From assembly GCF_001194135.2 (NCBI RefSeq), contig NC_068985.1, forward strand, positions 22,625,510 to 22,689,509: a stretch of DNA of 64,000 nt, read 5' to 3'. The translations under genes were made by a program, and so were the position numbers. The notes under the pieces were generated by a model. That model did not search any database. It had not been told where the DNA came from and worked only from the letters and a program-made list of their open reading frames with translations. This document shows, piece by piece, positions 8,544 through 59,800 of this stretch; position 1 is the first letter of the stretch; every line of letters starts with the position of its first letter. Source of the DNA: Octopus bimaculoides. Its lineage: Eukaryota.

Positions 8544-11500
8544 TTAATCTAGTTGTGCCATTGACAATTTAGGAATTTCTGCTACTTCCATGAAAACTCT
8601 GGAAAATAAAAATATAATATATATAATAAAACAATATATATATATAAATTACTACAAACACACAAATCCTAAAAATATTGCACACAAAATCTTTAAAATT
8701 TTCTAATCAAAAAGTATCTTTCATAGGCACAGGCACGCTTGTGTGGTAAGAAGCTTGCTCCCAACCACATGGTTCCAAGTTCAGCTCCATGCATGGCACA
8801 TTGTGCAGCTGTCTTCTACTAAAGCCTCAGGCTGACCAAAACCTTGTGAGCGGATTTGGTAGATAGATACTGAAATATCTCTCTCTCCCTCTCTGTGCGC
8901 GTGCATGCGTGCGTGTGACTCCACTGCTTGACAACTGATGGTGTGTTTGTGTCCCTGCAACTTAGCGGTTCAGCAAAGAGCAATAGAATAAGTACTAGGC
9001 TTAAAATAACTCCTGGAGTCGATTTGTTCAACTAAAACCCTTCAAGGCAGTGCCCCAGCATGGCCACAATCAAATGACAGAAACAAGTAAAAGATAAAAA
9101 CAGTCAGAGAGATTACATTATTACATGCTCAAAACTATCCTCATTTACATTCCAATAGGAACAAGAGTCATTACTTCATTTATTAGGTTGTGTGAGTGAC
9201 AAAGTAGCATTTGTAACTGTATTTCAGAGTCCCAAGCAGTTCCAGTTTTTTTGTCAGTAATTATGGCCTTACATCAAAAAGATATACAATAGGCTTCAGC
9301 AAGTTTCAGTTTGTGGAAATTCACTAAAAATCTGAGTGAATATATGAAGATGGAAACTGGCGGACAGAAGGCAAGTAATGGTAATAATGGAATTTAAGTA
9401 GATGGAAACTCAGTAATGATCAACATGATGCTATGCTAAAAGTTACTTATCCAAAGTGCCATGCAGTGTATTTGAATCCAAAATACTGAGCCACACAGCC
9501 AAGCCAACTACCAGTTAAAAAATATATGTTAGAGTCACAATAAAATGTACCCTGTTGTCATCATAATTTGGTGTGTGTATTCCATGCTGGCATGCACTGG
9601 ATGGTTTAGCAGGACTGCATCAAGCTCTAGCTTTGGCTTGGTTTCTGCAGGTGGATGCCTTTCCTAATGCCAGCCACCTTACAGTATGTATTAGGTGTTT
9701 TTTAGTGTCACTGGCACTAGTGAAATCAAGTAATTTGAAAGACAAGAGAAGGAAAAGGCCCCTCGACTGTGGGACTGTATGAGAGAGGGGGTGGTGGGTA
9801 TATTTGATAGAGGAATGCACATGTTGCAAGGATAAAGTATGATAGAGGAACAAACACAGGTGTTTTGCTAGATGAGTTACATCATAAAAGAGTAGGTGTT
9901 GAGTCACTGGAAAAACTGAAATGGTGGTCATGATTTGTCAGAAATTAGGGAAAGGGAGGCAGCAATAGAAACTATGCCAAAAACAAACTGTACAAACAGG
10001 ATATGGACTTGGAAAACTGCATTGCAAGCTACCTGTCCAGGAAGACAGTACACTGAATAAGAAAAGATTGAGTAGAAAGAATGATCTAACCACAAACATT
10101 CTCGTGTGCCAGTAGCATGGTAAAATGCCCCCAGTCTATAGTAAGACCTGCACTAAGTTGGCTGGTTTTCTGTGTTGTCGTTGCTGTGAGTCAAATGACA
10201 GATTATGTTAACCCTTTCGTTACCACATTTCTAACCAAATTACACCCCTTATGTGTTTCAATTAATTTTTAACATAATCATAAATCTAGGGTGGTTTCAT
10301 TAAACAACTTTAACTTTTTTATTTATCAACATATTAATGTGATTTTTGGAAGATAATTTAACAAAAGGTTCTCAACCAATTCTATACCAAAATTTTTGTC
10401 ACAAAGTGACTTTAATTACAGGTAAATTCAACAAAATATAAAATTATTAAAATTTTTGTTCAAACATCGCTATAGAAAATGGGTTATTAGCTAATATTCA
10501 ATTGGGTATACAACAAAATATTATTATAGAAGAGTTGTGCACATTACTGGATTCATTACTGTCTCTTTTGCCAGTATAAAATTAAAATCCAGAGCAGTAC
10601 CCAGTATTTGATTCACAAATCTTTTCCAAACTTTGATCCCCCGTTTTGTGGGCTTTCCTGGCATATACTGTCGAAAACGCACTCGGCCTTTATAGCCCAC
10701 CATATCCTCATCTATAAACTGTTTTATATGTGCTTTGAACACAGTCAATGAGGGGTCTTATTTTAAATAAGGGATCAAAGTCTGGTTTTCTACGTACTGG
10801 TGTACTGCTTGTGTCTCTTACATGTAGATATTGAGTCAATTTTAAAAACCGTATCCTCGTCATTATACTTGAGACATATTAGTCTCCAAAGGGTTCATCA
10901 CTACTCCAGTAATTTGTTATTCGAGGTAACTTTCTAATGCCCATAATAATATTTACGGCAAAATATGCTTTAATTTCATTCAAGTTTATGGGAAACCACA
11001 AACTATCCTTTTTTACGCTTTGTTTATGCCGTAATCAATTCAAATAGGTACTTCGGAAAAAGCAAAAAGAAATAGTCTAAAGCTTTACTCTCCTGGGTAA
11101 GACTGTGACTTGGTCCAGTTTCTTCAGAAAAATCACTGAAAAAAGGAGTTTTTAAATTTTCACTCCATTCAGGTACTAATTCATTCTCTTTATCGCTATC
11201 ATCGGAGCTCTCGGATTCACTGCTTTCATTTTCGGAAAATGAAAACTCAGATTCATTATCAAATACNNNNNNNNNNNNNNNNNNNNNNNNNNNNNNNNNN
11301 NNNNNNNNNNNNNNNNNNNNNNNNNNNNNNNNNNNNNNNCCACGTGCTTTTTTTTTTTTTTTTTCGGTTACAGAGTTAGATTTATCAAGGTCTTCAACGG
11401 AAAATCCTTCGAATTCTGACTCGATGCTTGACAGAATAAAATTCGTATCCATTTTTTTGTCAGGATTACAAATTTTGAAAACACAACAGGAACAAATTTG

Positions 11501-35500: not shown

Positions 35501-37801
35501 CGATCCGTGGATTGTCCCAGAGCATGATACTTTTATTTCACATTGCTCCAGACCACTCAGCTGGCAAAAAGGAGTTGTACTTGTAATTCAGAGCGATGTT
35601 GAATCTTCCAGAGAACTACGTTAAGGGTACGTGTGTCTACAAAATTTTCTTAGATGCTATAGTTGATTCCATAAGTATGCTTTTCAATCAGCCCATTTAA
35701 TGTACATACAATTTGTCTATCTTTGTACATCCTCCACATTCATTATCTGTTTTGCAACCATGCATTACATAATGTGCCTTTCACTGAAAAAGAGGCTCTC
35801 TAAAGTAATACCTACCTCAATTTAGTCACCCTGTTATACTTTGGCTGTCAACTTCTAGGCATTTGAAGGTACTCATTGCTAATTAAATCTGTGTATACAA
35901 AATCTTTCTACCAGCCAGTCGTAATAAACCAACTTTATTCCGTAGGCTTTGCTTCTATATTCGGAATTTGCTCCTAATTAACTGAGTTGTCTGACTTTCT
36001 GTAGAATTGCACCCAGACCAACAAATTTCTGGCCTATAATGACGACTACTACCTCATTCCTTGGACTACATGATCAAAAACTTTGCAAGAGATTCAATTT
36101 CAGCCATAAAAAAATCTTTACTAGGTTGTTTAACTGCTAATCAGCCCTATGATCTAAGTTATTTCCAGCTGTGATGTATAGGTTAAGAATCAAATTATTG
36201 TCTAATTAGATTTTGTACATAATTACTCCTTCTCTCAAGATACCTGCCTATAATAATAGAAGCATGTAACTAAACTATTTTACCTCCCCTGTCATTTTCA
36301 TCTGGTTAAGTGCTTTGTTCTCATCTCTGGTAACACATCCGAATGCTATTCTCTTCTCAGTCAGATTTGATTGTGAACCATAAATGGCCTCAAACTCAAG
36401 CAATCATAAAATCTAAAGCCACAGCACTGCTATCTGCTCAGATTTAAAACTGTCTCACATATACCTTTTGTAGACTGGCACACTTTTGTGCTGTATCTTC
36501 CAGAAATATCTTTTCTTTCAAAGCATAATGAACTTCAGAACTTCTTAGCTGTAATCCATGTAACATATATGAAAATCTGGTTGGAATGTAATAAACAGCA
36601 ATGTGCAATATAACAATTTCTGTTCATAATTCTTGGTAAAGAAAAACACCAGAACTTCTTGGTACTTTTTTCTCATAATACGTGTCCCTCCCTCCTGCAT
36701 TCCCATCAGATCTTAACAATTGACGTTCTCTCCCCTGTACTTAACTATTCTATTGATGTTCTTAAGTCTTTAACAGTTTTCTGTCTCCAATTGATTCAAT
36801 GAACTGTCCCATAAACTGCAATTGGTGTGCAACAGAGGTACTTGCTACTCTCTTGCAGATGTCATTTCTAACCAGCAAATATGGTCATTGAAGAGGAAAC
36901 AGTCATGTTTTAAGCATGCAGATACATGCTCCCTCCAAGAATGCTATACCCAATTATATCTTTCTGGGAAATCTTACATATTTGTTTGAAAAAAAAAAAA
37001 AAAAAAAAAACCCCGGGGCCTACTCCAGCTCTAGACATCCATAGAGTTTCCTGCAAATCACCTCTACAATAGTCTTGCAAGCACCTTAGATATTCATTTG
37101 TGATGTAGAGACAGTATCAAGCTCTTGTTGGAAACAGTAGGAATAATTAAATAAGCATACAAAATAGTGTACTTGCCAGGAAATTGAACAAACCCAAGTC
37201 GTATACTAAATGTACAAACGTTCAAGAGACTATTCTACTGGTCAGAAAAACTTTTTGTTCTAATAAACAAATCGTGATTATTAAATGAAATTTATTCTTA
37301 AATTGCAGTACTCATCTAGTCATGATAGTAAATCCATGCTTTACTTTGGCAAAGCATATACATCTATTAAGAAACTTTTACCAAATTATTTCCGACTCCC
37401 AACATACAAAATTCACTTCACAATGTCTCACTCTAAAGCTATATTATAACAGATGAATCTTTGTATTTGAGAAACAATACTTCTGCTCTTCAGAATGAAT
37501 CCTTACCAGAAAGGTATAAGCCTCTCTGGTTACTATTGAAACATCTATTTCCATTGATGATTAAATGACATAAGTAACAAAAGGTATGAACTACATTTAG
37601 GAAGTCCTAACATAATCATTTGCATGTGGTTGTTGAAATAACAATGAATACACCAAATAATTCACGAATGAAATTTGGTGCTTCAGAAATTGAGCACAAC
37701 ATAAAATATAGTAGGAATAACTTCAGAAAAATACAGATACCAGGAACAACTTTATTCCACAGTAAAAACAGATATCAAACAGATGCCCGGGATCATTCTC
37801 C

Positions 37802-40800
37802 TCACTAGAAAGAAAAAAGAAAAAGAAAAATTAGAAAATCATTTAAGCACGAACTACAGTTTAAATTCACAATGAATTTCAAAATGAAGTGTATATGTAC
37901 ACACACATCAGCAAACGATGTTAGTAAAAAGAACCCAGTGGTAATACAAAGTTATCAAAAAAAAAAAAAAAAAAAAAAAAGTCAACACTTCAAACAGGAA
38001 ATGGTTTGCATGCTATAGTAATCATATAACAATTTAAGTCTTTTAAATCTATTTTACTGATATAACTAATATTGTAATTCTAAAAACAAATTAACAACAG
38101 GAACTTTAACAGAACACTCAATTTCACATCAATTTACCTAACTGTTAAACACAAAATCTCAATGTTACATAAAGTGGGATGATTTAAGCCGACGGCATTC
38201 TCACACCCACTCGAAGTCGAGGTTCATACTTGTTGCAGTATGGATACCAGCAACCCTCCTTTTAATGAACTCATTATAAACTGACTTTTATAGTTATAAA
38301 ATCTCTAAACTACTTTCAATATGTGCAGTAGCACTTTTACCACAAAACCAACGTTACTGAGTATATTTTATGGCAAAAAAATATACTCAGGAGATTAGTT
38401 TTAATTCAAAACAAAAACAAGGTGTATGAGAGCAGGTGATCAGAAAGCAGACTATTTGTGATTTTCAATGCCTACAATAACCGTCACGCACTCTCTGAAT
38501 TAAATGTTAAGTTACATACAGAATATGGCAAATTGACAAACAGTGACTAACACTAATTTCACCTTTCATTTCAGAGTACAAATTATGATGTGTGTATTAA
38601 TAAGTTTTTTAAAACTTTGCTCTGAAGATAATTTTGGGTTAACTACTTTAGTAAAGTTAAACCCCCAAATTTTCAAAGCAAGAGGAACTATATTTACAAA
38701 CAACATAATGGTACATGGCAAAAAGTGTACTGTCAGTCATATTTTGTATGTAACATGCAAAAAAAGGGAACACACAACAATACAAACCTTTTCATGTCTG
38801 TACAAAAATAATCTATACAAATTTCTGAAAAGACTTGAAAATTGGCCTATATAATCCAAAATGAATGAAACGGCATTAATATTTTATGGTGAATTACAAC
38901 GACCAAAGTGCTGGAGTAGTAATTATGAATACATACAACTGCCATTGTACTGTTCCTTTAGGCAATGTATGTTTATGTCTCAACACATGCAGCTGTGTAA
39001 ATTAACCAACCCATACTTTTAGGTTGAGGGGTTAAAGGTAAGAAAATTGCTAACAGAACTGCAAAAAAATATGCTCCAGCATTATGCCTGAAATTCCCAG
39101 ACCATCATGCCTAAGTTAGCATGGATAAACGGAAGTACAACAGTTAAAAATTTAAACGAATATTTACAGACATGAAAAAGTTAATGCGTAAAATAAACTA
39201 TTCTAAAAAGGTAGACTGGTGCTAGGAGGTAATTAAGAATAATTTAGATGAACAAGGAAAACATCAGTTCAAAAGTGGAGCACAACATTCAGGAAACACT
39301 GGTGGCATCAACATTAAAACGAAGATATATCAACCATCTTACCAGATATAGAAATAGTAGAATCTTATTTTTTCTAAAAATGAAACAAAATATTTCATGA
39401 TGTAAAACATACCAAAATACAGGAAATACAGCATTATCTACATCACTACTTTAAATGGGAAAGCAGAGTATTGATAAATAGAAAATTACAGAATGAACAA
39501 CAACAGCCGTCTTGGAAGAAGCACCGCTCACAAAGAATACTGAAAGCAGACTTTGCCGCATTTACAGCAAAAACACAAAAAACCTTACCTTTTTGCCAGC
39601 ACCAATTTTGGTTTTAGCCACACCCCGTACTTTCTTTTGCCTATTCTTTCTTTCTTTTCTCTGTTTGCGGCTTATCTTTCCTTTCTCATAGAGACCATGC
39701 TAAAAGAAAAACAAAAATCATTCTCATGTTTTCGTTTTCTTCTACATCTTAAATCTATTTTATCAATTTTTACATTATCCAATTCAATATTAAACAACAT
39801 TTATTTTTTTTTCAATTTACAAAGCTTTAGCTAAATGTTGATTCAAAATACACATTTAAAATTCAGGGAAAGAAAAATACATACCCTTGCTAATCTGTGT
39901 TTAGGCTCAAATTTCTTTGCAAAATCTAATGTGTCATATATCATAGCAAACCCCGTACTTCTTCCACCGCCAAATTGTGTCCGGAAACCAAAGCAGAAAA
40001 TCAGATCTGGTGTAGTTTTGTATTTAGATGCTAATTTTTCACGGATCTCTGTCTTAGGTACAGTAGCCCGTCCAGGATGTATGACATCTACCACCTATTT
40101 GAAGAAAAATAAAAAATGTAATTCTTTATCATTTCAAGAGAGCATCAACAGACTAGCACAGCATGACACACCTAATTTTCAGACAACAATGCCTGGAAAT
40201 TTGAGATAGAAAATACCAGGGAGATGTTTTCACAGGAAGTGTGCAAGAGTTGGAAGGAAATGATGTGACCATTCCTTGCTGGATAAGTAATGTGTAAAAA
40301 ATGAACTGAGGGAAAAATTAGATATGAAGAATCAGAAGTAGTGTAAGAGAAGACTATGCCTGCACAGTATGGAGGATGCCAGTCATGTAAAAAGGTGTAG
40401 AACACCTTAAAGATTACACAGAACTGAAATTTGTGAGGAAGTGATGTGCTGGAAAAGATTCGCCCAACATATCTGTGCAGGAACGGCAAAAATTGATGAC
40501 AATGAGCTATGGGATGCAGAATATCCACATTTGTATCTTTCCTTAATATTCAGTCTTAGTCTTCTTAATATTCTACTGACTTTGTAGCTACCTCACAACT
40601 ATCACCATATTTATTCCCATCAAACCATCCATGTAAAGAAGGAAAGTATAATTTTGATCTGCCTATATCAAATCCCAATTCTTTATTGTTAGCCACTACT
40701 CACTGCTTCCCCTACTACATGCCACTATCCAATCTCCTTAAAATATTTACCGAACATTGTTCCATCATTATATTCTCTTCCACTGCTCGCCTCTATTTGC

Positions 40801-43800
40801 CAGGGATCAGCATGGCAACACAGATGTAAAATGATGAAATATATTGAACTGGCTAATCCAAAACCAACTCATAAGAAATAACCATATCACAACATTTGTG
40901 AACTGAGTAGATGAAGCAGTTTTATGTCACTATTCTCTACATCAATGCCATAAGATTAAGAAATATTATGAAGTGAAACTAGTTACACAGTTCCATGCAT
41001 AAGAGCCTCCTACTATAGGTTCAATCCAACCAAAGCCTTGTAAGTGAAACTTAAGAGACAGGAACTATGTTGAAGCTCATTGTGAAGACTGTTCCTCATT
41101 CTGAGAGTGCATGGATGCCATAAACAGAAGCCAGTCTGATGCAAGCATCCTAGCTGGTTTCCCTGGTCTGAGAACAATACCCAGTCAACAGAATGGTGAA
41201 ATGAAAAACCAAGTGCTGTTTACAGAACCATCATGATTGAAAAGTAGAAGACATCCTTCTGGCAAGGTACCAAAAGGATCAGTTGCAATTTTGTGAGGCA
41301 AAAGAGGCACAGAGCTAGTTTTTGGGATGATGGTCCCACATGGTTGTAATGTTGGGTAGCAACCACCCATCCAGCTTATGGGGATGTATGATTTGCTTAA
41401 AGCATTGCTCTCTGCCAGAGTGAAGCACATAAAGAACTGTTAATATTGACGAAACAGAGCACATATCTATCAGCCCAGTTACAAAAAACAAAAATCAAGT
41501 AAAAAAACAATGTTATTTGTCACGACATTCTCGGAACCACTGAAGAATAAAATCAAAAGCAGCTCGATTTATATGAAGTAATTAATGTAGCTATTATGAA
41601 CAAGATCCACATAATATCTTAAAAAAGACCATGTGGGGTGAAATAGCATTTGACAGAGCCGTAAGAATAACTCAAACAATTTTGCTGTCAATATAATTGA
41701 AAACAGTTGGAAGACTTTCATCACCCACTTGTATATAATCCATAAGCATGTTTTTCCTACAAGTATAGCTTCTGAGTACCTTCATCCAATTAGAGACACA
41801 TGAAAGAGAGTAAAATCAGCTCAGCAGGAATTAAGTTTATTAGAGAAATGATGTTTGCAGCCATATGTTAGTGCTGTAAATGGCACACTGGATATAAGGG
41901 CAAAAGCAACATAACTCATTTTCCCAGAAAGCCCAGCAAAGTATCATTTGAAGAAAAACAATTTACTAAATACAGAAATAAAAACAAGAAAAAAATTTTC
42001 AATAACACAATCAGGAACAATGACAAAACACCCCATATCTGTATGCAGATATGCTTGTACAACATTGTGTGAACAAAGCAACTGTAATTTATGTAATTGT
42101 TTTAAAAACCCAACACCAACCGAGTCTGATTAAAGAAAACAAAGTCATGTAACAACAGTTGCGAAACCACAAGGACAAACATACCAAATGGTTCGATTAG
42201 ATGAAGTAATTTTATGTAGCTATTGTATATATATATCAATGCCACAATATGAAATAAAACATACCGTGGAGTAAAAATAGCAATTTATAATGTAGGGATT
42301 TAGGAGATTTCATGAGCAACCAGACATGTGTACCATCACTTTACAAAGACATGCTAGTTTTAAGGTATACATTTATGTTAGTATTGTAAAAGGCACACTG
42401 GATATAATTCACAAGCAACATAACTCATTTTCCCCAGAGAGAGAAAAAATAAACACAATCAGGAACAATGACAAAGCAACAGTAATTTATTGTAGTTGTT
42501 TAAAAAACCCAACACCAACCCAATCTGATTAAAGAAAAAGTAAAATCATGTAACAACAGTTGCGAAACCACTAGGATAAACATTCCAAGAGGTTCGATTA
42601 GATGAAGTAATTTTATGTTGCTATTGTATACNNNNNNNNNNNNNNNNNNNNNNNNNNNNNNNNNNNNNNNNNNNNNNNNNNNNNNNNNNNNNNNNNNNNN
42701 NNNNNNNNNNNNNNNNNNNNNNNNNNNNNNNNNNNNNNNNNNNNNNNNNNNNNNNNNNNNNNNNNNNNNNNNNNNNNNNNNNNNNNNNNNNNNNNNNNNN
42801 NNNNNNNNNNNNNNNNNNNNNNNNNNNNNNNNNNNNNNNNNNNNNNNNNNNNNNNNNNNNNNNNNNNNNNNNNNNNNNNNNNNNNNNNNNNNNNNNNNNN
42901 NNNNNNNNNNNNNNNNNNNNNNNNNNNNNNNNNNNNNNNNNNNNNNNNNNNNNNNNNNNNNNNNNNNNNNNNNNNNNNNNNNNNNNNNNNNNNNNNNNNN
43001 NNNNNNNNNNNNNNNNNNNNNNNNNNNNNNNNNNNNNNNNNNNNNNNNNNNNNNNNNNNNNNNNNNNNNNNNNNNNNNNNNNNNNNNNNNNNNNNNNNNN
43101 NNNNNNNNNNNNNNNNNNNNNNNNNNNNNNNNNNNNNNNNNNNNNNNNNNNNNNNNNNNNNNNNNNNNNNNNNNNNNNNNNNNNNNNNNNNNNNNNNNNN
43201 NNNNNNNNNNNNNNNNNNNNNNNNNNNNNNNNNNNNNNNNNNNNNNNNNNNNNNNNNNNNNNNNNNNNNNNNNNNNNNNNNNNAATAAAACATACCGTGG
43301 AGTAAAAATAGCAATTTATAATGTAGGGATTTAGGAGATTTCATGAGCAACCAGACATGTGTACCATCACTTTACAAAGACATGCTAGTTTTAAGGTATA
43401 CATTTATGTTAGTATTGTAAAAGGCACACTGGATATAATTCACAAGCAACATAACTCATTTTCCCCAGAGAGAGAAAAAATAAACACAATCAGGAACAAT
43501 GACAAAGCAACAGTAATTTATTGTAGTTGTTTAAAAAACCCAACACCAACCCAATCTGATTAAAGAAAAAGTAAAATCATGTAACAACAGTTGCGAAACC
43601 ACTAGGATAAACATTCCAAGAGGTTCGATTAGATGAAGTAATTTTATGTTGCTATTGTATACACCGATGCCACACTCAGCCATAAGATTAAGACATAGAG
43701 TGGAATGAAAATAGCAGTTTATAATATATATATACACACACAAAATTTCATGAAAAAGTAGACGAGTACTGTCACTCTACAAAGACGTGCTAGTTTTAAG

Positions 43801-46800
43801 GTATACATTCATATAGTTTTATCTAAGTTTAGGAAAATCAGTTAAAGAAGAAGCCACCAACCTAAGTTGCTACTTTTTGGTTATCTCATCCCCATTAAAA
43901 AACTGGGTTATCTCCCCACTAATAAAAACCTAGTTAATGTGGCGACAATAGATTGGATTAAGAGAGATCCTTTGGCCTCCTCAATAGGCATAGTATGATT
44001 AATTATCAGATTCAGTAAAATGTTAAATTTTTCTTTGTTTTATTGAGGGTTAAACAACTTTTTTAGTTGAAGGAGATAACCAAAGTACCGATATTTCTCG
44101 TAAAACGGAGGGAAATAACCCAATTTTTTAATGGGGGTGAGATAACCAAAAAGTACCCCCAAAGTTATAGATACTTAAGAAATGTATGTGTCCATACTAG
44201 AGACCGGCACTGTCATGGTATTAGCTGTCAGAAGTGAATGTAGAAAAATCTGACAAGGAACGTTACTGCTGGTTTGAGTTGATTCTTTGGCTACTGACAG
44301 CTAATACCATGACTGGCCGGAGCGAGCTATCTGTCTGTCTGTCTCTCTCTCTATCTATCACTCGAAAGTTATTGGAACAAATTTGACACCTATATCCATG
44401 CGTTTGAAAACACACAGAGTATAAGGGTACTACTAAAGCAGAGTGGTCCCGAACGCGCAGTCGCGCGTCCGCGCTAGCTAGTCGTGAGTGGTCGATCCTA
44501 TTATTTTTTAACTTCAAACTTCATTTGTTTTCTATTTAGATAAATTCTCTCTGTTGAAAATTATATTTTTATATTTTAAATAATTTGCAATTTCAGAAAA
44601 TATATTTTTATATTAAATTTGCGTTTTCTAATTTGATAAATTCTACGGACACAAACAGGTGAACGAGTGATAGATAGATAGATAGATATAGAGAGAGAGA
44701 TAGTGAGATAGACAGACAGACAGACAGATAGATAGCTCTGGCTAGTCAGTAGCCAAAGAATCAACTCAAACCAGCAGTAACGTTCCTTGTCAGTTCTACT
44801 TTCAATTCTGACAGCTAATACCATGACAGTGCCTAGAGACCACCTGGTATGTGATGGTCTCGAGTGTGGACGCTTGAATTTTGACTTGTAGATGTTTGCA
44901 GCAGACTGCTCCAGCTTTACAAAATAGACATTTAACAAAATAACTCAACAGAGAACATGCTCCTTCATTTTTCTTAAAGACCAGCTGGTTTTAAAAAGAT
45001 ATACCAAGGAATAAAATTGCCTATTATTACACTACCACTTGGCACATGGGTGTCTTACCCTTTTGTTGCCATATTTTTGATAAAATAAGCTGCTTTTGTT
45101 TAGTTAATTTTAAGATAATGAAGAATTTTATTAAAACAAATTTATGTCATAGAACTGGAGGCGGTCCCAAAAGGATTAGAGTCCAGTGTGCTGCATGTCT
45201 ATGAGGTAACACACCCGGGGAACTCAGTATTATCACAAGAAAATATAAGTAAAAGTCATGTAACAACAGTTGCGAAACCACTAGGATAAACATTCCAAGA
45301 GGTTCGATTAGATGAAGTAATTTTATGTAGCTATTGTATCACCAATGCCACAATATGCCATAAGATTAAGACACACTGTGGAGTAAAAATAGCAGTTTAC
45401 AGAGTCAAGAAAGGATCCACATTTAACAAAACAACTAGACAGACAACATGCACCTTCATTTTTCTCAACAAGACCAGCTGGTTTTAAAAAGGTAAACCAA
45501 GGAATAGAATTTTCCCAATATATGACTACTGAAATGATCATACACAAATTTATAACGATGCTTGCTTACTTAAATATTACACATACAGAATAGTGATCAT
45601 GATGGTGTGGAGGGTATTTGTTTGAAATTTAGCTTCTTTTCAGCTGGACAATTAAGTTGGCAGCAAAAAGGCCATTTCCATGCGAGTAACTGCATACAGA
45701 AACGTCGATCACAAGAAGAGGACTCTCCAAGCTTGTAGGAATTCCTCTGGCAAAGGGATCGATGAAAAGGATTGTCAAATATATTGCTTATTCATTCACA
45801 TTATTTTGACTTAATCATTCACTACCTCATATCTTCAATGATGTAATTGTATTCTTTGAGAATGACATTGTAAGGTAGGAGTGTGAGGCTGGTTATGGCC
45901 AGTTTCAATGCTAAAGTGTGAGCAGCAAGAGAACTATCAGGCCATGTAATGCATGGAAGAATCCTTCATCAGCTGATGGTCTTGTAGGGGTTGCAGTGCT
46001 GGGTCTGATTTACGGAGGTGGGAGATTTTGTTCAAAGCATTATTCTTTGCCCAAGTGTACTAATTTGGGAATGTAGTGGTTATGTATAGGGGGTGGGAGT
46101 ACTTGGCTAAAAGGATGCGTTTACTATTGCACTCCTGTATGATAGCCCAGAGATGAAGAACATGCACTACCAGAAAAAAATTAGCACAGAACTAGCGGAG
46201 CCCCATCCAGTCAGGTAATATTGCATAGTATGCATATGGCAAAAAGATGAAATACCTATTTCAAGAGATGGACTTCTCCCAAGTTGATTTTCCTCATTGA
46301 CTTACAAAAGTACACTAAGATAGGTATCTTGTAATAATCAACAAAGGAAGGAGATTAAAGATGAAAAGTGAATAAATAAAAACATTGTCACAACACTCTC
46401 GGAACCACTAAAGAATTTGTCGATAGCAGCTCGATTTTATGAAGTAATTAATGTAGCTATTATAAACAAGGTCCACATAATATCCTAAAAAAAAGGACTA
46501 TGTGGGGCGAAATAGCATTTATACTATTATATTCCTTATCATCATTTAATGCCTACTATTTCATACTTGCACAGGTAGATTGTCTATGGTCAGATGCTTT
46601 TCCTATCACCAACCCTCACCTGTTTCCAAGCAAAGTAATATTTCTTCATGGTTGGCATATTTTCAAAAGAATGAAAACAAAGGCTACAGCGTGTGTGATG
46701 GCAAGTCTCATCTACAACTCTCATAACACGACAACTTCTTTCAAATGTTACTTACCAAATCTACAGCAGAAGACATTAACCAGAAGTGCCACACAGTTGG

Positions 46801-48732
46801 TCTGCGCCCAAAACTAAACCTAATTGGAAATAGCTGAAGAGAAATGTGAAGTTCTAGTGGAAAACTCCCCACTCACTTGTATACAATACATACGTTTATG
46901 ATTTTGTGGTTTTTTAATGCCAACTTTTATTACGGAACCTTATAAAAAAAAAAACTTCATACTTATAAGTGAATATATCTGCATAAAGTTATATGAACAA
47001 AGCAAGAAGGCGATATTACGCATAACTAGCACAAAAATTATGCACACAAAGCTAAGATAGTACTTCATCAAAGGTAGTGAATTGAGGAAGGAAAAAAAAA
47101 TCCCGGCTTTTTCTACAAGTCGAATATTAAAATTAAGCACAGTTACCCTACAGCTTTTATCATCTATCCTGAATTGCCTTTCAGCTCTTTCTGTTTAATC
47201 AATTTACCTTTAACCTGTATGCAGGTTTTCTCACTATTATAGAGTCCTGTTTCAACGAAGATATTCAACCACTATACACAATTGCATGGACCAGAAAATT
47301 TACACACAAATGCTGAGAGGTGGAAGGCAAAGCTTCTCCCTTTGTAATATAACGCACTAAAAACGAATAAAATAGCAACCAGATTCGAGGCAGTGTGGTT
47401 TCGAAGCCGATCCATACACTACGGGCAAAACTTCAATAGTCATAACTGAACAAATGAAAAGAAACAATTCTCACTAATTACAGCTAAAGCCAGGCATTTC
47501 CGATGCCCTTTCGATGTCTCGGGAAAATATATTAAGTTCTAAGTTAAAAAACCATTGTGTAGAGCTATAGGTTAAGTCCTGACATTAAAGATCACCATAG
47601 CTGCTACATCAGTACTGAAAGTCTATATCAAAGAACCATGTTGAACCCATCTCAGTACCCTTATTAGAACACTGTCCACATTACCTTTCTTGTAAACAAT
47701 GAAATATTTTTCATCGGTCAGTTTCAGAAGTTTAGTTGGTCTGTAATCTTAAATGATATACTCACCATCTGCTTTCTGCATAATAGACGGTTCGTTAAGA
47801 ATTTCCTGGTACGTATTGTAGCTGCGCTTTCAGCCTGAAATAAAATTCACAACAATGAATTCACCAGATGGATGTTTGAAAATAAGTGCTAAGTTCTTTT
47901 CAATCAGCCTGCTTTTGAAATTAATATTCACAAACTAAGAAGTTTTATATCGAACTCGAAGGAATGGACATGACGTTTTCGCTTCAGAAGCATTTGAAAG
48001 TTAATGAATAAAGGCGTAGTGCTTCTATTTAAATACCGTTCATAAACAAGCAAGTTATAAAGTGCAACATGTTGAGAAGTCGGCAGGAACCGAAAACTAT
48101 TTCAAAAGATATTTCACTAAGAATGCCGTGTAATTAAACATTTACTTCAAAGCAAATGTAATGTAGGTGTAAACAATTATACCGAATTAAAACTTGAACT
48201 ACTTCAAGTCATATGATTATAATTTTTTTCCAATTTATATACTGTATAGCAACCCATGTTGTAACATGTATAAAATCATATTAGTGTTAATTTGGTAATA
48301 TTCAAAGTTACATTCCACGTGTTCTTGAAATGAAATTATTTTTACTTCGTTCCTTGATTAAAGAATATTTTACTGATAGTTTTTTAGGAATACTGAATTT
48401 AATACCGCTGTTTTCAATACCAACGATATATGAAATGCACCTCTACTAGCTCAGATATAAAATGAATTACGTCGCATTTGCCAAGAAGTGAGTACAAATT
48501 TGAATCAATATTAAATATATACAACACATGCACATCATTAAAATGGCGACAAGTGCCATCAACATGAGAAATAAAACTAAAAAATATAGCTTATTACCAT
48601 TATTTTAACGGAAAATCTCAATTTTAAATAAGTTAAATTCTTAAGCAATTAAAACTAACATAATTGAGCCTATAAAAATATTTTAAAAAACGACGATTGT
48701 AAACGATTTAAAGAGACAATCTAACTTACCAT
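37802..48732 (-). CDS. RPS24: 40S ribosomal protein S24 (eS24), 131 aa
   Basis: Exons: 48732-48730 (ATG only, donor GTAAGT), 47834-47766, 40094-39885, 39699-39589, then a terminal exon starting at 37804 with TGA (acceptor after a long pyrimidine tract; AATAAA at 37756-37751). Protein [38 protein letters not shown]...[14 protein letters not shown]...[14 protein letters not shown]...[16 protein letters not shown]. Confidence 0.95.
39343..39373 (-). CDS. RPS24: Candidate 31-nt RPS24 cassette exon encoding KK-stop
   Basis: ttttgtttcatttttag|AAA AAA TAA GATTCTACTATTTCTATATCTG|gtaaga; in frame with exon 4. Confidence 0.6.
41515..41649 (-). ncRNA. Candidate H/ACA snoRNA, copy A (subfamily 2)
   Basis: 5' hairpin (GCTATT/AATAGC, CCACAT/ATGTGG), H box ACATTA (41588-41583), 3' hairpin (AGCTGCT/AGTGGTT), ACA (41520-41518). 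Sense to the RPS24 intron. Confidence 0.7.
42145..42283 (-). ncRNA. Candidate H/ACA snoRNA, copy B (subfamily 1)
   Basis: H box ACATAA (42217-42212), ACA (42150-42148); stems CCACGG/TTGTGG and AACCAT/GTGGTT. (TA)n expansion in the 5' pocket. Confidence 0.72.
42546..42631 (-). ncRNA. Candidate H/ACA snoRNA, copy C (subfamily 1), 3' half only; truncated by the N gap
   Basis: H box 42618-42613, ACA 42551-42549. A matching 5' half appears after the gap at 43284-43314. Confidence 0.65.
43577..43717 (-). ncRNA. Candidate H/ACA snoRNA, copy D (subfamily 1)
   Basis: H box 43649-43644, ACA 43582-43580. The 5' upper stem is changed to CACTC/GAGTG (pairing retained). Confidence 0.72.
43870..44155. mobile_element. 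Unclassified MITE with ~45-bp TIRs
   Basis: tactttttggttatctcatcccattaaaaaactgggttatctccc is the inverse of gggaaataacccaattttttaatgggggtgagataaccaaaaagta. Confidence 0.7.
44206..44833. mobile_element. Non-autonomous DNA transposon with ~160-bp TIRs and an 8-bp TSD (Merlin- or Mutator-like)
   Basis: Termini GGCACTGTCATGG...CCATGACAGTGCC; exact TSD TAGAGACC at 44198-44205 and 44834-44841. Confidence 0.88.
45256..45395 (-). ncRNA. Candidate H/ACA snoRNA, copy E (subfamily 1)
   Basis: H box 45328-45323, ACA 45261-45259. Pocket strands TCTAATC (45312-45306) and TTCGC (45276-45272); the pocket apex is 15 nt from ACA. Confidence 0.75.
46383..46518 (-). ncRNA. Candidate H/ACA snoRNA, copy F (subfamily 2)
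   Basis: H box ACATTA (46454-46449), ACA (46388-46386); stems CCACATA/TATGTGG, TCCT/AGGA and AGCTGCTA/TAGTGGTT. Confidence 0.72.
48540..48548 (+). promoter_or_regulatory. YY1-type site AAAATGGCG in RPS24 intron 1
   Basis: Exact motif ~215 nt downstream of the predicted TSS, a known position for YY1 sites in ribosomal protein genes. Confidence 0.5.
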
Positions 48733-48757
48733 GGTGAATGGATCAGTACAGATACCG

Positions 48758-48764
48758 GAAGAGG
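48758..48764 (-). promoter_or_regulatory. TCT initiator / 5'TOP start of RPS24
   Basis: CCTCTTC fits YC+1TYTYY; the transcript would begin CTCTTCCGG, 31 nt before the ATG. Confidence 0.75.
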
Positions 48765-50893: not shown

Positions 50894-53800
50894 ATGATGA
50901 GTCATGGGACCTCCCCTAAAAAGCTAAAACAATGTACGCTTGATGATCTATTCAATAAAAGATCAACACCTGGACACAAAGGTATGTGTAATTGTCAATC
51001 ATTTAAATTTCCTAGTTATTTCCTTATTTTGGCAAGGATATTGAAGCATTGAACTAGGATCATTGATGTATCCAGTTCAGTGATTTTGGTTTAAAATTAA
51101 ACACTATGAATTTTGCTCGATCATCATACTTGAGTTGATATCCGTTACAAAACAGACTTTGTATTCTGTAAAAAATTATGTTTATCCCTTGATTACCTCC
51201 ATAATGTTGGTTTCTTTAATATTTGTGGTGACTGGAGTCAGTACTAACATTTGTATGAAGCTGAATTCATAAAGTTGTAATATTTTTGCTTTTCCTTGTT
51301 TAAATGTTCCCCACTCTTCAGATTTCATGGATGTCAGAGATGTGAAGGTTACTAAGAAGCTTCATTCCTTCTACTTCTCAGCCATGATAATTCTGTAAGA
51401 AGTATTGCTGTTGAGAAAGCTCCTACATTTGCTGCCTGCTTTGCCTCCTGCACACACTTGGTAAATCTTAAATCTCCTTCAGAACTATCCCTCTTCATTC
51501 CACCAGGTTCGCCATATTCACCTCTGTGAAAGCACGTCTAGTTGCTTCAAACCGACAAGGAAGTGAGCCCTGACAATGTCCCCTCTTTCACTCTCAAATA
51601 ATCTACCCTAGAACTTGCCAAATTCTTCAAACTTTCTGTCTGTCTGTCTCTCTCTCTCTCTCTCCCTCCAAAAACCTACCATAGTCTTTGTAAATCCACT
51701 TCAGTGCATGCCGTTCCCAAAAGAGCAACTCCTTTGACCCTTCCAGCTACTGCCCAATCACTTTCAATCAGCTTTGAGATGTTAGAAGTGAGACAGTCAT
51801 TAACAACCACCTTCTCCATCACCTTGAAAATCTCTCCCTTTTCAATAACTCCTCTTAATTTTGTTTTGTTCCATGGAATTTCCATGGGTCACATTAGTTA
51901 CTAATATTTGCATATTTATTGTAACTGTGTGGTGAGAGAGAAACAGATGAGACTGATGATGTTATTTATTACTTCCTTATGGAAAAAATAAAGTTTAGGG
52001 AGAATTATATCAATAAATAAGATTTATAAAAAAGGAAGTATATTGCAATTTCTAGTGTATATGTAACACTATTTTATACTTAATTTTAACTGAAGAGACT
52101 AGGGTGTAATTTATACATGAGGCAAAACTGGTATCAAATTTGAATATGAAGGGAAATAATATTGCATCAAGATTTGACACCAAATTTTAAGTGCTACTTA
52201 AAATTGAGAAAATACAGTAGTTTTTAATCTCAAAATATATCAGAAGTGAAGTGAAAAATATTTTCAGTTTAGCTAATAAAAATAAATAAAAATAATAGCA
52301 TTACTAGGATAATCTGTAATTTTCAATTTGATAGTTATGTACAAACATTCATTGAGATGTTTCTAATGGATATTGTATTGAATATCTCTCATACATTTTG
52401 AAATATATATATTCATATATTTTTGACTTCATAGCTACAATGCAAGATTCCTTCAAACGTGATGATAAAGATCTAAAAGTTACTGATTCTCAACCAATTC
52501 TGGATAATAAATTATCAGAAAGTGATGACTTGTTGGGAGAAAAGAGGTAATTCCTTTACTATTCCATTTATTTTTCTCATTCTTTTTTTCTTCTTTTATT
52601 TAAAGATTTATATAACTTCTATGCGTTTATTCTTGTATGTTGGTTTGAGTTTATGGAAAAATGTCTAGGAACTGATTACAACTGTTTCTTTAGTAGTTAG
52701 CTTCCATGAGAATTAAGAGTCTCTTTTACAGTAAGAATCATTTAAGGATATATTCCCTACTTATCTCTGCTATTTGGCTGATCTCAATCCAAGTGGCACA
52801 ATTGTTGTTTTGGACAATGACTTCTGCTCCAGTGTTAAGGAATGTTAGCTCTGTCTTGGCAAACTATTAGGTTGGCAACTAAGTTCCTGCCGTTTTTTTA
52901 AATTTAAATTTTTTAAAAGGTTTAATAAAAAATAACAACTAATTAATCAATAATGTATTCACCCTTGTTGTTTACAACTTCTTCTCAACGTTCAACAAGT
53001 TGGTAGAAATCCCCCGATTTTGACTCGAAAAATTGATTCAACCAAGCTCTCAAATCTGTATCAGTATTGAATGAAACTCCGTGCATAGCATTTGAAAGAG
53101 ATCGAAAGAGGTGAAAATCCATTGGTGCCAAATCAGGAGAGTACAGCGAGTGTGGCAGCACTTCCCAGCCATGCGTTTGAATGGCTTCCTTGGCCATATT
53201 GGCAATATGAGGGCTGGCGTTGTCGTGCAGTAGAAGAACTCCATGCTGTCGATTAGGTCTTTTCTCTTGAGTTGTTCCATCTGTTGAACACAGATTCCAT
53301 GTTGACCATTTGGTTCCGTTCAAGCGATTTGTAATGGATAATCCCTTCCCAGTCCCACCATACACACAACATTGTTTTACATAGATGAAGATCTTGTTTC
53401 ACACGCAGTGTCGTTTGTTTACCGGGGCTAAGCCATTCCTTACGCTGCTTCATATTGATGTACAGGCACCATTTTTCGTCACCAGTAACGATTCAGTAAA
53501 GAAATCGTTGCTTGTGTCCATGAGTTGAGCGGTGACGAGCAAGCAAACCAGCGGAGATTGTGGCTTGTTGATTTTGTTGGTTGGCATTAGGAAGGGCATC
53601 CAGATCAGATTAGAGCCTGGTGCAGCTGCTGGCTCTCCAGACCTCAGTCAAACTGTCCAATCCATGCCAACATGGAAAATGGACGTTAAACGATGATGAT
53701 GAAGATGATGATATTTGTGTGTGCATGTGTATGTCTTTGTGTTTTCTTTCTGCCACTACTTGTGTCAGTCTGTTTTTGTCCCCAAACTTAGTGGTTCACC

Positions 53801-56800: not shown

Positions 56801-59800
56801 GTTTGAAGGAAGAAGTACATGGGACAGTCACTGGATAGAAAGAGTACTTGAGTCAGAAATATGCAAAATTTTGTTGGATTTTCTAATTCAAAAGGATAAG
56901 AAGATACAACATAGCAAGCCAGATATTACAATAATAGACAAGGAAAATCAAATTTGTTTACTGATTGATCCATCATGTCCATTTGATTCCAGGATTGGGA
57001 AGAAAGAAGATGAAAAGTTGAAAAAAAACAACCTCTTTAAAATGTATGATTGTGAGGATTTGGAACATGAAATTTATAAAGGTTATACCTGTGATAATTG
57101 CTGCATTAGAGACTGAATGATGACATAGACAAATGATTAAAGATCAGAATGGAATGTTTTGTTGAGCTTCTACAAAAAGTTTGTCTCTGAAGAATAGGAA
57201 AGATCATGAGAAGGGTTTTGAGTACTCGACGGCATATTGAGATCATGGGGGTATCTAGGGTTACATGTAGTAACTTACTACCTGCTTAAATTCTGTCAGG
57301 AATAAGACCAATCTTAATTCAAGTCTAATAATAATGAACTCATTGTATACAGCACTCAGACATGCTATAATTTGTCAGAAAAAAGTAAATGAAGGGAGAG
57401 AAAACACCAACAAGGCAACTAGAAGATTCAATAATAGTCATAAGTTCACGCACAGTACACAGAATAAGACACAAAAAGAAAGTAAAGTGGACAATAAGAG
57501 CCATAAAGAGGAGAGGGTGAATAGGCATGTCAAGAATAGTGTCAGTAAATTTCAGGGAGCATGGAATTTTTGAAGGATGCAGTTTCCTGACTTAGGTGAG
57601 TTTATTCCCTGCTTTGACAGTTCTGAGAATGAAAAAAATGTTTATGAAAGTGATGGCTGCTGAACTATTTTTGATTTTATAAGAAAGTCCACATTCCTTA
57701 CGAAAAAAAAACTTGTGGAAATATATTTGATGAGTTTCTGTTGGCACTTCGTCGCTTACGACGTCGAGGGTTCCAGTTGATTCGATCAACAGAACAGCTT
57801 GCTCGTGAAATTAACGTGCAAGTGGCAGAGCACTCCACAGACACGTGTACCCTTAACGTAGTTCTCGGGGATATTCAGCGTGACACAGTGTGACAAGGCT
57901 GACCCTTTGAATTACAGGCACAACAGAAACAGGAAGTAAGAGTGAGAGAAAGTTGTGGTGGACGAGTACAGCAGGGTTCGCCACCATCCCCTGCCAGAGC
58001 CTCGTGGAGCTTTAGGTGTTTTTGCTCAAAAAACACTCACAACGCCCGGTCTGGGAATCGAAACCGCGATCCTATGACTGCGAGTCCGCTGCCCTAACCA
58101 CTGGGCCATTGTGCCTCCACATTTGATGAGTAGCCAATGGTTAAATTAATCATTATGATCCTTTTTGTTTATATTCTGTTTTGCGATTTCTTAATATAAA
58201 TCTATGATTGGGAAAAAAACTTTCTTTAACCCTTGTGTTTCAGAATTCCTATCCAATTGAGAAAATGCATTGTGCTCCAACCCCTTGGTCAGAACTTTTC
58301 CCCAATACAAATAAGGAACATTATATTATGTTTACATTACCTGTAAGTATTTTTTATGTTTCTTTTTTAGTCATTAGATCTAGTAAACTGATATCAGTGT
58401 AGTAATAAGGTAATGAACTTTCAGTTGATTGCTCCTGTAAATTAGTTATTGTTTGTTGCTTGGCCCAACATTGGCTTTGTTCAAGTAGTCCTACGATAAA
58501 ACATGTTTCAACCATGTTCATTCCAACTTTTTCTCAGACATACAAGTGCAGGCATGGTTCGGGTTGAGAAGCTTGCTTCCTAACCATGTGGTCTTGAGTT
58601 CAGTTCCACTGTGACACCTTGGGCTTCTACTATAGCCTCGGGCTGACCAAAGCCCTGTGAGTGGATTTGGTAGATGGAAACTGAAAGAAGCCTGTTATAT
58701 AATTGTAAGTGAATATATGTTTGTATCTCCTTGTCTTGACGTCACATGATGGTTGTAAATGAGTGTCACTGTCATACAAGCAGTGTCAGTCATTTCCAAT
58801 CTTCTGCAAAAACATGTCTGGCCTTGGGGAAGTATTATTTTGCTTGGAGATAAGTGAGGATTAGTTGACAGGAAGGACATCCACCTATAGAAAACCTGTC
58901 TCAATGAATTCCATAGGACCCATACATTGCATTTTGCTCACTTTGATTTCCAATAAAAACATAATCAACATCATCATCGTTTAACGTCCACTTTCCATGC
59001 TAGCATGGGTTGGACGATTGACTGAGGACTGGTGGACCAGGAGGCGACACCAGGCTCCAATCTGATTTGGCAGAGTTTCTACAGCTGGATGCCCTTCCTA
59101 ACGCCAACCACTCCGAGAGTGTAGTGGGTGTTTTTACGTGCCACCAGCAAAATGAAGTTGATAACCTGAAAATGAATTTAATAACTGAAAATGTAATAAC
59201 CTGAAAACATTATAGTGTCAGGTTAAATACACTACAGTGTTTAGTTTCCAAATTAGCTGGTATCTGCTTTATCTTTAATTCTTTCTTGATCAATACCTAA
59301 TTGTTCACTGGGGTCAGTTCAACTGAGATTACCACTGACCTGTAAATGTTACCCTTGTGCCTAGTCTTAAAGAATCAATATGATAAATGTTTGTGGTAAG
59401 TGTTGTAGCATCTGTACAATTCCTGATTGTAACTTTTTCATTTTATTTACATTGCTCATGCTTTCTTGAACTGCATCGTATTTCATTTCTCTTCTCTTAT
59501 AAACCCAGAACTTTGCTAACCAATAAGTGAACTTCTACATGATCATTTGCCCTGCTACAGTTAGCTGCTAAAGCTCCCTCAAGTCATTCCCTTTTATCTT
59601 AACAACAGAAGTCAGACATATTTAGATTTGCTGTTTTGCAGCTAGCAGCAACAAAATTCCAGGGTTTTGTTCTTTTGTAAGTAATTAATATAATTCAGGT
59701 TTAACTAGAGAAGTGCTGTTTCATTATCTGAATAAATTATGTTGTTTGTACTTGACCACAGACCCCCATGAATATCCAGCAACTGTTTGGGATAATATTT

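Follow-up and report, generated by a model that had tools for sequence, protein, structure and literature searches.

Octopus RPS24 and its short alternative exon

The window, i.e., the whole stretch of 64,000 nt of Octopus bimaculoides chromosome CM046605.1 analysed here, carries on its minus strand the RPS24 gene, which encodes the ribosomal protein eS24. Its parts, in the order of transcription, are as follows.

48730..48764, minus strand: exon 1, read from the sequence; ATG at 48732-48730, then gtaagt
47766..47834, minus strand: exon 2, 69 nt, 23 aa
39885..40094, minus strand: exon 3, 210 nt, VVDVIHPG...HRLAR
39589..39699, minus strand: exon 4, 111 nt, ending ...IGAGKK in phase 0
39374..39477, minus strand: conserved upstream intronic flank, holding the polypyrimidine tract and acceptor
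39343..39373, minus strand: alternative cassette exon, 31 nt, AAA AAA TAA plus 22 nt
39257..39342, minus strand: conserved downstream intronic flank, the GTAAGA donor and ~80 nt rich in UGUUG and GAUG
37730..37804, minus strand: terminal exon, first codon TGA, AATAAA at 37756-37751; 3' end putative

The start region of exon 1 is pyrimidine-rich and TOP-like (CCTCTTCC), its 5' end and the length of the 5'UTR being placed provisionally by analogy with the ~30-nt 5'UTR of a decapodiform mRNA contig (L004). The four constant exons add up to 1+23+70+37 = 131 amino acids, or 133 with the cassette, and the spliced product is 100% identical to Octopus eS24 and 76-81% identical, exon by exon, to the human protein; the matches carry PF01282 (Ribosomal_S24e). 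The last base of exon 4, 39589, closes a codon (...GGT GCT GGC AAA AAG, then gtaagg), and the exon is followed by an intron of 215 nt (39588-39374), the cassette (AAAAAATAAGATTCTACTATTTCTATATCTG, between the acceptor ttttgtttcatttttag and the donor gtaaga), a second intron of 1538 nt and, at 37804, the terminal exon, whose acceptor reads ttcttttttctttctag/TGAGGAG.

Two products follow from this arrangement. When the cassette is skipped the protein ends ...GAGKK (131 aa) at the TGA which opens the terminal exon, and when it is spliced in the protein ends ...GAGKKKK (133 aa) at the cassette's own TAA (39367-39365), which lies 22 nt 5' of the last exon junction. The 3'UTRs differ as well, since the inclusion form gains the 22 cassette bases after TAA together with the TGA of the terminal exon. 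Because one stop is in the last exon and the other 22 nt before the last junction, neither mRNA should be an NMD target, judging by the geometry of the stops; the corresponding distance is 15-34 nt in Argonauta, the decapodiform, Haliotis, Ostrea, Branchiostoma and Pongo, stops less than ~50 nt from the last junction being the ones expected to avoid NMD. A sequence-only reading of this DNA had proposed the exon with its acceptor, GTAAGA donor, AAA AAA TAA start, 215-nt spacing and TGA-first terminal exon, all of which proved correct to the base. It had also predicted the -KK and -KKKK products, which match annotated Octopus isoforms X2 and X1 exactly, and an escape from NMD with the stop 22 nt before the last junction, which is the geometry found.

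The cassette is thus already known to the databases, being present in RefSeq and ENA gene models. The 133-aa form is isoform X1 in the RefSeq sets of O. bimaculoides and O. sinensis (exact matches XP_014789219.1 and XP_029636794.1), the 131-aa form is isoform X2 in the same sets (exact matches XP_014789220.1 and XP_029636795.1), and both have exact matches in the O. vulgaris annotation too, in the ENA gene models CAI9722764.1 (133 aa) and CAI9722763.1 (131 aa). That annotation used Iso-Seq and RNA-seq and was built with PASA (PMC10700109). Support for the two forms in Octopus itself takes the shape of gene models (Gnomon, PASA), the Logan collection holding no transcript contigs of Octopus RPS24 and the exact proteins being found on three genome assemblies only. 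As the cassette exon is annotated already, there is nothing to correct in the octopus genome annotation. Full-text searches of the literature returned vertebrate accounts only, the invertebrate isoforms being unremarked database entries.

Conservation of the exon and its flanks among cephalopods

Over the 3' half of the gene (2617 alignment columns) the identity between O. bimaculoides and O. sinensis is 91.4%. The longest identical run of the alignment, 221 nt, has the cassette at its centre, and all runs within coding exons 3 and 4 are shorter. The upstream flank (39374-39477) is identical between the two species, its proximal ~60 nt being kept in Argonauta, where the downstream flank (39257-39342) is nearly invariant; the latter can be regarded as a candidate intronic splicing regulator. 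In Argonauta three islands alone can be aligned: the two exons 4 and terminal and, between them, the cassette together with the flanking intron sequence. The orthologous cassette is 30 nt long there (AAAAAATAA) with both splice sites intact, and the TGA-first terminal exon is kept in O. sinensis and Argonauta alike. A hairpin that would hide the cassette donor, by pairing UAUAUC in the exon with an intronic GAUAUA, was considered and rejected, its folds being no more stable than those of shuffled sequences.

Transcript evidence comes from RNA contigs of a squid or cuttlefish relative. Two of these, one skipping the exon (L004) and one including it (L006), are identical over 1166 nt save for a 24-nt insert, AAATAAATCTTGCATCTACCACTG (AAATAA…), which sits exactly at the junction of exon 4 with the terminal exon; the path assembled in the two runs SRR5319789/90 was the skipped form, and that in SRR8281693/64, likewise two runs, the included form. 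We place the contigs L004-L008 as decapodiform, on the grounds that the PARG of L006 has 85% identity to that of Acanthosepion pharaonis and 56% to that of Octopus, and that the nucleotide sequences of the remaining contigs are nearly identical to that of L006. A second cephalopod-like contig has a 30-nt cassette, AAATAAATCG...CTG, and AAATAA...CTG is common to the octopus, Argonauta and decapodiform cassettes. Both inclusion and skipping are represented by annotated isoforms in three Octopus species and by decapodiform RNA contigs of either kind.

How often such an exon would arise by accident can be judged by scanning the window on its two strands at the cassette's own stringency (at least 14 of 20 pyrimidines, an AG-exclusion zone, a GTRAG donor and a length of 3-60 nt). 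The 128 kb scanned gave 29 pseudo-exons, i.e., ~0.4 expected in the cassette's intron, and among them the cassette alone reads at least one basic codon and then a stop. Given its conservation and its annotation, the cassette is well beyond chance.

The eS24 tail in other animals and its origin

In vertebrates the same end of RPS24 varies through three small exons (a, 3 nt; b, 18 nt; c, 22 nt), the resulting proteins being S24-2K, S24-3K and S24-PKE (PMC11162997, PMC8563012, bioRxiv 10.1101/2025.03.28.645676). The octopus locus resembles this system in the gene, in the intron after ...GAGKK and its phase 0, in having a short exon with an early in-frame stop (after 0 or 1 Lys codon in vertebrates, after 2 in octopus), in the C-terminal residues being the sole difference between products, and in every stop falling within 50 nt of the last junction. 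Conservation of the flanking intron is high in both, the region around exon a having been termed 'ultraconserved' (PMC8563012). On the other hand, octopus has one 31-nt cassette instead of three microexons, and adds two lysines (KKKK), a variant unreported in vertebrates. Its stop-first exon is terminal, whereas vertebrate c is an internal cassette followed by the PKE-encoding exon 6. Its cassette has no demonstrable sequence similarity to a, b or c, with which, in a side-by-side reading free of any alignment statistic, it shares a Lys-stop start and scattered short matches only. An eS24 orthologue, the intron position and phase, an early stop and a stop geometry predicted to avoid NMD were nonetheless all found in octopus, as in the RPS24 C-terminal system of vertebrates.

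Similar loci exist in other animals. The layout common to those compared is a short exon with few codons and a stop, and then a stop-first exon: Haliotis has a 24-nt cassette (AAGTAA...) and Ostrea, whose locus was reached through isoform X1, one of 21 nt (AAGTAAACC...), each before a TGA-first terminal exon; Branchiostoma has a 36-nt cassette (GGACGTTGA...) before a TAA-first one; Tachypleus, a horseshoe crab, has an AGATAA... exon and a TAA-first exon; and Pongo, the orang-utan, has exon b (AAATGA...) and exon c (TGA...) after an exon 4 ending AAA AAG/gt. Across loci the exon measures 18-36 nt and the residues added are K, KK, R, GR or PKE. Annotated pairs of ...GKK and ...GKK plus 1-3 residues are found in molluscs, an annelid, amphioxus, sea urchins, chelicerates, insects and a crustacean; for hemichordates and crinoids the match list holds the 131-aa form only. 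The compared loci were picked because databases list their isoform pairs, and so carry an ascertainment bias; a P-value for the stop-first next exon, seen in 6 of 7 lineages, was discarded as circular, the loci having been chosen for an annotated ...GKK isoform.

Among molluscs, the cassettes of Haliotis, Ostrea, Crassostrea, Saccostrea and Gigantopelta are known solely as RefSeq isoforms X1, X2 and X3. Those of Haliotis and Ostrea have the octopus order of exon 4, a 21-24-nt cassette opening AAG TAA and a TGA-first terminal exon, but where octopus has two extra lysines and a strong GTAAGA donor, the abalone and oyster cassettes have one extra lysine and a weak GTAYAA, and their similarity to the octopus exon is confined to the AA(A/G)TAA start. 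Gastropod and bivalve cassettes have AAGTAAAC..ATGGTG..CAG/GTAYAAAG in common. Cassette similarity can thus be traced within cephalopods, and between gastropods and bivalves, but not across phyla.

The sequence-only reading had suggested looking for the exon in squid, bivalves and annelids, and each of the three gave a positive result: the 24-nt decapodiform exon, included and skipped in RNA contigs; a 21-24-nt exon in bivalves and also in a gastropod; and annotated KK and KKK products in the annelid Owenia. It had left the choice between a deeply conserved and a convergent mechanism, of which deep conservation fits the distribution better, even if homology of the exon sequences between phyla cannot be demonstrated.

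We consider it highly probable that the octopus exon is a genuine, alternatively included 31-nt cassette of eS24, the invertebrate version of the vertebrate a/b/c system, most likely inherited from the bilaterian ancestor. Exon 4 ends in phase 0 after ...GAGKK, and the next exon chosen sets the tail. Inclusion of the cassette adds two further Lys codons and TAA, for the -KKKK protein of 133 aa, and skipping it brings the terminal exon's TGA to be read first, for the -KK protein of 131 aa. The outcome would be two presumably stable mRNAs, and proteins unlike only in the length of a solvent-exposed lysine tail. Inclusion is probably governed by the unusually conserved intronic flanks, its use may be regulated by tissue or cell type, the one hint of this being that separate decapodiform runs yielded different forms, and the extra lysines may have an effect on the ribosome.

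The bolder claim, that the tail switch is a single regulated alternative-splicing event passed down from the bilaterian ancestor, opposing -KK to an extended basic form, is one towards which we lean only slightly. If it were true, the switch, which lies in a core ribosomal protein, would rank with the oldest alternative-splicing events known to be conserved, and ribosome heterogeneity at the eS24 tail would be functionally important across animals. The occurrence of the same switch in octopus, other molluscs, an annelid, arthropods, echinoderms and amphioxus argues for selection over more than half a billion years. Splicing of mammalian RPS24 is among the most tissue-variable events and is being put forward as a marker for cancer, hypoxia and neuroinflammation; non-vertebrate systems are now on offer for testing the function of the tail.

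A competitor is convergence, where the intron after ...GKK is ancient and the cassette was gained separately in cephalopods, other molluscs, amphioxus and vertebrates, a short AG...GT segment in so A-rich a context readily giving Lys and a stop. We regard it as somewhat unlikely, yet it has points in its favor: the cassettes have no evident similarity across phyla when read side by side and differ in length (18-36 nt) and residues, an alternative terminal exon, not a cassette, seems to be used in Tachypleus, and the vertebrate extras (the 3-nt exon a and the PKE exon 6) are missing from the invertebrate loci examined. It would, however, have to produce the same position, phase, order and -KK baseline in all three bilaterian superphyla, from pseudo-exons which are rare by chance, and it sits badly with the motif shared by gastropods and bivalves and with the AAATAA...CTG of the cephalopods. 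The layout, at least, judged from its recurrence at these loci, was most likely inherited from the bilaterian ancestor.

Alternative use of the exon and its level of action

The splicing choice could act at the RNA level, through 3'UTR content or the translation and stability of a TOP mRNA, with the lysine tail being incidental. Some human RPS24 variants encode identical proteins, for which Olivieri et al. propose a function at the nucleotide level (PMC8563012), and in octopus the exon's 22 non-coding nucleotides and the flanks are as strongly conserved as its 9 coding ones. What stays constant across phyla, however, is that the number of C-terminal basic residues changes, the non-coding part of the cassette not being conserved between them, and we find this explanation unlikely.

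Quite improbable is that the 31-nt exon serves in practice as a constitutive last exon of the coding region, isoform X2 with its -KK end being a rare mis-splicing caught by annotation pipelines. The splice sites at either end are strong, so that near-constant inclusion is possible, and the intron before the exon is a short one of 215 nt; RefSeq lists the inclusion form as X1, and strong conservation of the exon fits this account too. Against it, gene models of the skip product were produced independently for three Octopus species, with two pipelines, the decapodiform skip form was assembled in as many runs as the inclusion form, and the stop-first terminal exon is kept in O. sinensis and Argonauta, although nothing would maintain such a stop in an exon consisting of 3'UTR alone. 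Moreover, the conserved intronic flanks are longer than the exon itself, which is typical of regulated and not of constitutive exons.

That the conserved island is no exon at all, serving instead as an intronic enhancer, snoRNA or miRNA, is barely credible: small RNAs are often hosted by ribosomal-protein introns, but Rfam has no matches anywhere in the window, the 221-nt island and the 80-nt segments of Octopus and Argonauta fold no better than shuffled sequences (z = -1.0, +0.8 and +0.2), the equivalent sequence is spliced into mRNA contigs of other cephalopods, and the cassette is included in gene models.

As an alternatively included exon, the cassette also invites comparison with known programmes of splicing. 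For human RPS24, the regulators implicated are PTBP1, ESRP2, RBM47 and QKI. The microexon programmes of bilaterian nervous systems rely on exons no longer than 27-51 nt, whose flanks are conserved. The octopus exon is like these in being very short and in the strong conservation of its intronic flanks, but differs in terminating the reading frame, with no insertion of residues into a protein surface. By a microexon cut-off of 27-30 nt or less, the 31 nt of octopus fall just above, Argonauta has 30 nt, and the decapodiform, abalone and oyster exons (21-24 nt) qualify.

The RPS24 gene and its optional exon

On either side of a low-complexity stretch, the window is 100% identical to Octopus bimaculoides chromosome CM046605.1 (GCA_001194135.2), over 6217 and 6131 bases. 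A tblastn search with human RPS24 as query places the eS24 gene on the minus strand of the window, where its exons read as follows.

Ending with the ATG at 48732-48730, minus strand: exon 1, a pyrimidine-rich start region (CCTCTTCC) preceding the ATG
47834-47766, minus strand: exon 2
40094-39885, minus strand: exon 3
39699-39589, minus strand: exon 4, ending ATT GGT GCT GGC AAA AAG before the donor gtaagg
39373-39343, minus strand: 31-nt cassette, AAAAAATAAGATTCTACTATTTCTATATCTG, between acceptor ttttgtttcatttttag and donor gtaaga
From 37804, minus strand: terminal exon, TGAGGAGAATG after acceptor ttcttttttctttctag, with AATAAA at 37756-37751

Exon 4 ends at a codon boundary after IGAGKK, and introns of 215 nt and 1538 nt separate the cassette from exon 4 and from the terminal exon, respectively. 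The cassette had been predicted in a sequence-only reading, all of whose coordinates and sequence statements agree with our re-reading of the minus strand, including the 22 nt between its TAA and the last junction.

Both predicted products already exist in public annotation. The 133-aa form (GAGKKKK, cassette included) exactly matches XP_014789219.1 (O. bimaculoides X1), XP_029636794.1 (O. sinensis) and CAI9722764.1 (O. vulgaris), and the 131-aa form (GAGKK, cassette skipped) exactly matches XP_014789220.1 (O. bimaculoides X2), XP_029636795.1 (O. sinensis) and CAI9722763.1 (O. vulgaris); the cassette belongs to the known C-terminal splicing of RPS24. For O. vulgaris, Iso-Seq and RNA-seq data went into the annotation via PASA, which gave only 1.36 transcripts per gene (PMC10700109), so that its extra isoforms are transcript-driven. 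A third O. vulgaris model of 141 aa, ending KKVTFFFCVFLL, continues past the donor of exon 4 into intron 4. The same read-through in the window (39588-39562) would encode VRFFVFLL before a stop, so the extension is not conserved, and the 141-aa product probably represents a retained-intron transcript rather than a functional isoform.

Could such an exon arise by chance? When the window was scanned on either strand for 3-60-nt segments between AG and GTRAG whose pyrimidine tract was no worse than the cassette's own, 29 candidates emerged in 128 kb, or about 0.4 expected for the cassette's intron, and the cassette alone among the 29 encodes at least one basic codon followed by a stop. This makes the sequence by itself suggestive; it is the comparative data that decisively settle the case.

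Elsewhere in the gene, about 25 unbroken T occur on the gene strand (37980-37956, minus strand), some 150 nt before the terminal acceptor. Intron 2 (7.7 kb) is packed at about 46500-41500 with AT-rich dispersed and tandem repeats (GC 0.22 at 42001-44000), among them a 379-base block present twice at 100% identity and, by self and cross-species BLAST, many copies at 75-90%; this part aligns poorly to O. sinensis.

Conservation and use of the exon in cephalopods

Between exon 3 and the 3' end, the alignment of O. bimaculoides with O. sinensis spans 2617 columns at 91.4% identity, and its longest identical run, 221 nt (39477-39257), has the cassette at its centre, the longest inside a coding exon being 198 nt. 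Only three islands align in Argonauta hians: exon 4, the cassette with its flanks (39435-39260) and the terminal exon, which is also TGA-first. There the cassette is 30 nt long, and almost no change is seen in its acceptor, in AAAAAATAA, in the GTAAGA donor or in some 70 nt of the intron downstream. These octopod alignments contain no further conserved island in the introns, and hence no hint of additional hidden microexons. Neither a stable RNA structure (by folding) nor a match to an Rfam family was found that would account for the conservation around the cassette; UGUUG and GAUG motifs abound in its downstream intronic element.

Direct transcripts come from Logan RNA contigs, whose encoded eS24 is 91% identical to the octopus protein. 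Two of them (L004 and L005) read GGCAAAAAG then CAATAAGAAGC, giving KKQ-stop, and two others (L006 and L007) read GGCAAAAAG, AAATAAATCTTGCATCTACCACTG, CAATAAGAAGC, giving KKK-stop. L004 and L006 differ solely by this 24-nt block, with zero mismatches in 1166 nt, so that one species makes both forms; PARG on the opposite strand of L006, 85% identical to that of Acanthosepion (Sepia) pharaonis and 56% to that of Octopus, identifies this species as a decapodiform. The check proposed for squid is positive in this squid or cuttlefish relative, which has a 24-nt equivalent, both included and skipped. In a close relative (L008) the terminal exon begins TAATAAG, giving KK-stop, and in the more distant, cephalopod-like L009 a 30-nt cassette, AAATAAATCGTTCATCATGATTGACATCTG, precedes CAGCAGCAACAACAGTAA.

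In octopus, two mRNA and protein forms are annotated, the splice sites of the cassette are strong, and the intron sequence on either side of it is highly conserved. These flanks may bind splicing regulators that set inclusion per cell type, by analogy with PTBP1, ESRP2, RBM47 and QKI in human RPS24. Two versus four lysines could alter the solvent-exposed, modifiable end of eS24 (PMC8563012, PMC7025504) or, as has been proposed for S24-PKE (bioRxiv 10.1101/2025.03.28.645676), change how stable the protein is.

A shared layout across Bilateria

Comparable exons occur well beyond cephalopods.

Haliotis rufescens (abalone), 4722-4745: 24-nt cassette, AAGTAAACATGGTGCACACTCCAG; terminal exon begins TGATCAAG
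Ostrea edulis (oyster), 9270-9290: 21-nt cassette, AAGTAAACCATGGTGTCTCAG; terminal exon begins TGAGATGG
Branchiostoma lanceolatum: 36-nt cassette, GGACGTTGAG... (GR-stop); terminal exon begins TAAACTG

The abalone layout, in which exon 4 ends GADKKK before gtaaca, agrees with isoforms X1 (KKKK) and X2 (KKK), and that of the oyster with isoforms X2 (KKK) and X3 (KK). Both cassettes share CAG before AAGTAAAC, an ATGGTG, and CAG before GTAYAAAG. This donor is weak and unusual (L010, the abalone locus, 4746-4753; L013, the oyster locus, 9291-9298), whereas octopods have the strong GTAAGA, and the means of limiting inclusion may thus differ between mollusc classes. In Tachypleus an AGATAA-first exon (R-stop) and a later TAAACAAGG-first exon explain isoforms X1 and X2; an AATAAA of its own makes the AGATAA-first exon look like an alternative terminal one. 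Pongo shows the published human scheme (PMC11162997, PMC8563012): exon a AAG, exon b AAATGAAGTGTCTAGCAG, exon c TGAGCTGGAGATTGGATCACAG and exon 6 CCGAAGGAGTAA. Annotated isoform pairs contrast GKK with GKK plus K, KK, R, RH, GR, GK, GKK or AKK in oysters (six species), abalones, Gigantopelta and Owenia, in three amphioxus species and Lytechinus, and in scorpions, a horseshoe crab, Hemiptera, Odonata and Artemia. Bivalves and annelids, also proposed as places to look, are hence represented by the Ostrea exon and the Owenia pair.

We interpret the octopus cassette as one version of a design general to Bilateria. In this design the last regular coding exon closes at GKK in phase 0, an optional short exon adds a few mostly basic residues and a stop, and the next exon is stop-first, leaving the bare KK form on skipping. 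In octopus the stop-first exon is terminal; in vertebrates the stop-first exon c has become internal, as a cassette, and PKE is encoded by one more exon. In all cases examined, 15-34 nt separate the cassette's stop from the last junction, so that by the usual 50-nt rule neither mRNA should be an NMD target; the escape expected for octopus at 22 nt holds as far as geometry goes.

The exon had been proposed as either deeply conserved or convergent. Deuterostomia, Lophotrochozoa and Ecdysozoa agree in position, in phase, in order and in the baseline product, among loci chosen with a bias towards species having annotated isoforms, which favours common ancestry of the architecture; the cassettes themselves are too short and diverged to prove their homology across phyla. 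Full-text literature searches returned descriptions of RPS24 splicing in vertebrates and none in invertebrates, its homology having been traced as far as the electric eel; RefSeq and ENA contain the invertebrate isoforms, which, as far as could be searched, have drawn no discussion. The broader pattern is of more interest than the octopus exon itself.

The PARG neighbour and mislabelled entries

The gene for poly(ADP-ribose) glycohydrolase (PARG) lies head-to-head with RPS24.

50897-50968, 58250-58342 and 61280-61405, plus strand: PARG in the window
L001 and L002, 1-866; L003, 1-1673; L006, 640-2604; L011, 1-921; L013, 1-2820: PARG on other contigs

The same arrangement is seen in O. bimaculoides, O. 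sinensis, Argonauta, the decapodiform RNA contig, Ostrea edulis and Branchiostoma lanceolatum. Locus tags of the two genes are consecutive in the mussels Sinanodonta and Potamilus, and the equal size given for the longest contig in several echinoderm and hemichordate entries suggests a shared contig. The pairing has the appearance of an old microsynteny of Bilateria, and the two genes may share a bidirectional promoter. Over their whole lengths L006 and L007, from two independent RNA-seq assemblies, fuse a spliced RPS24 mRNA to the full opposite-strand PARG CDS, through either divergent transcripts overlapping at their 5' ends or assembler chaining across a short intergenic region.

Finally, '40S ribosomal protein S24, partial' entries assigned to Salmonella sp. 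and Clostridium perfringens (clusters P0190, P0192 and P0195) cluster at no less than 90% with sea-cucumber and oyster eS24, and are eukaryotic contamination of bacterial assemblies.
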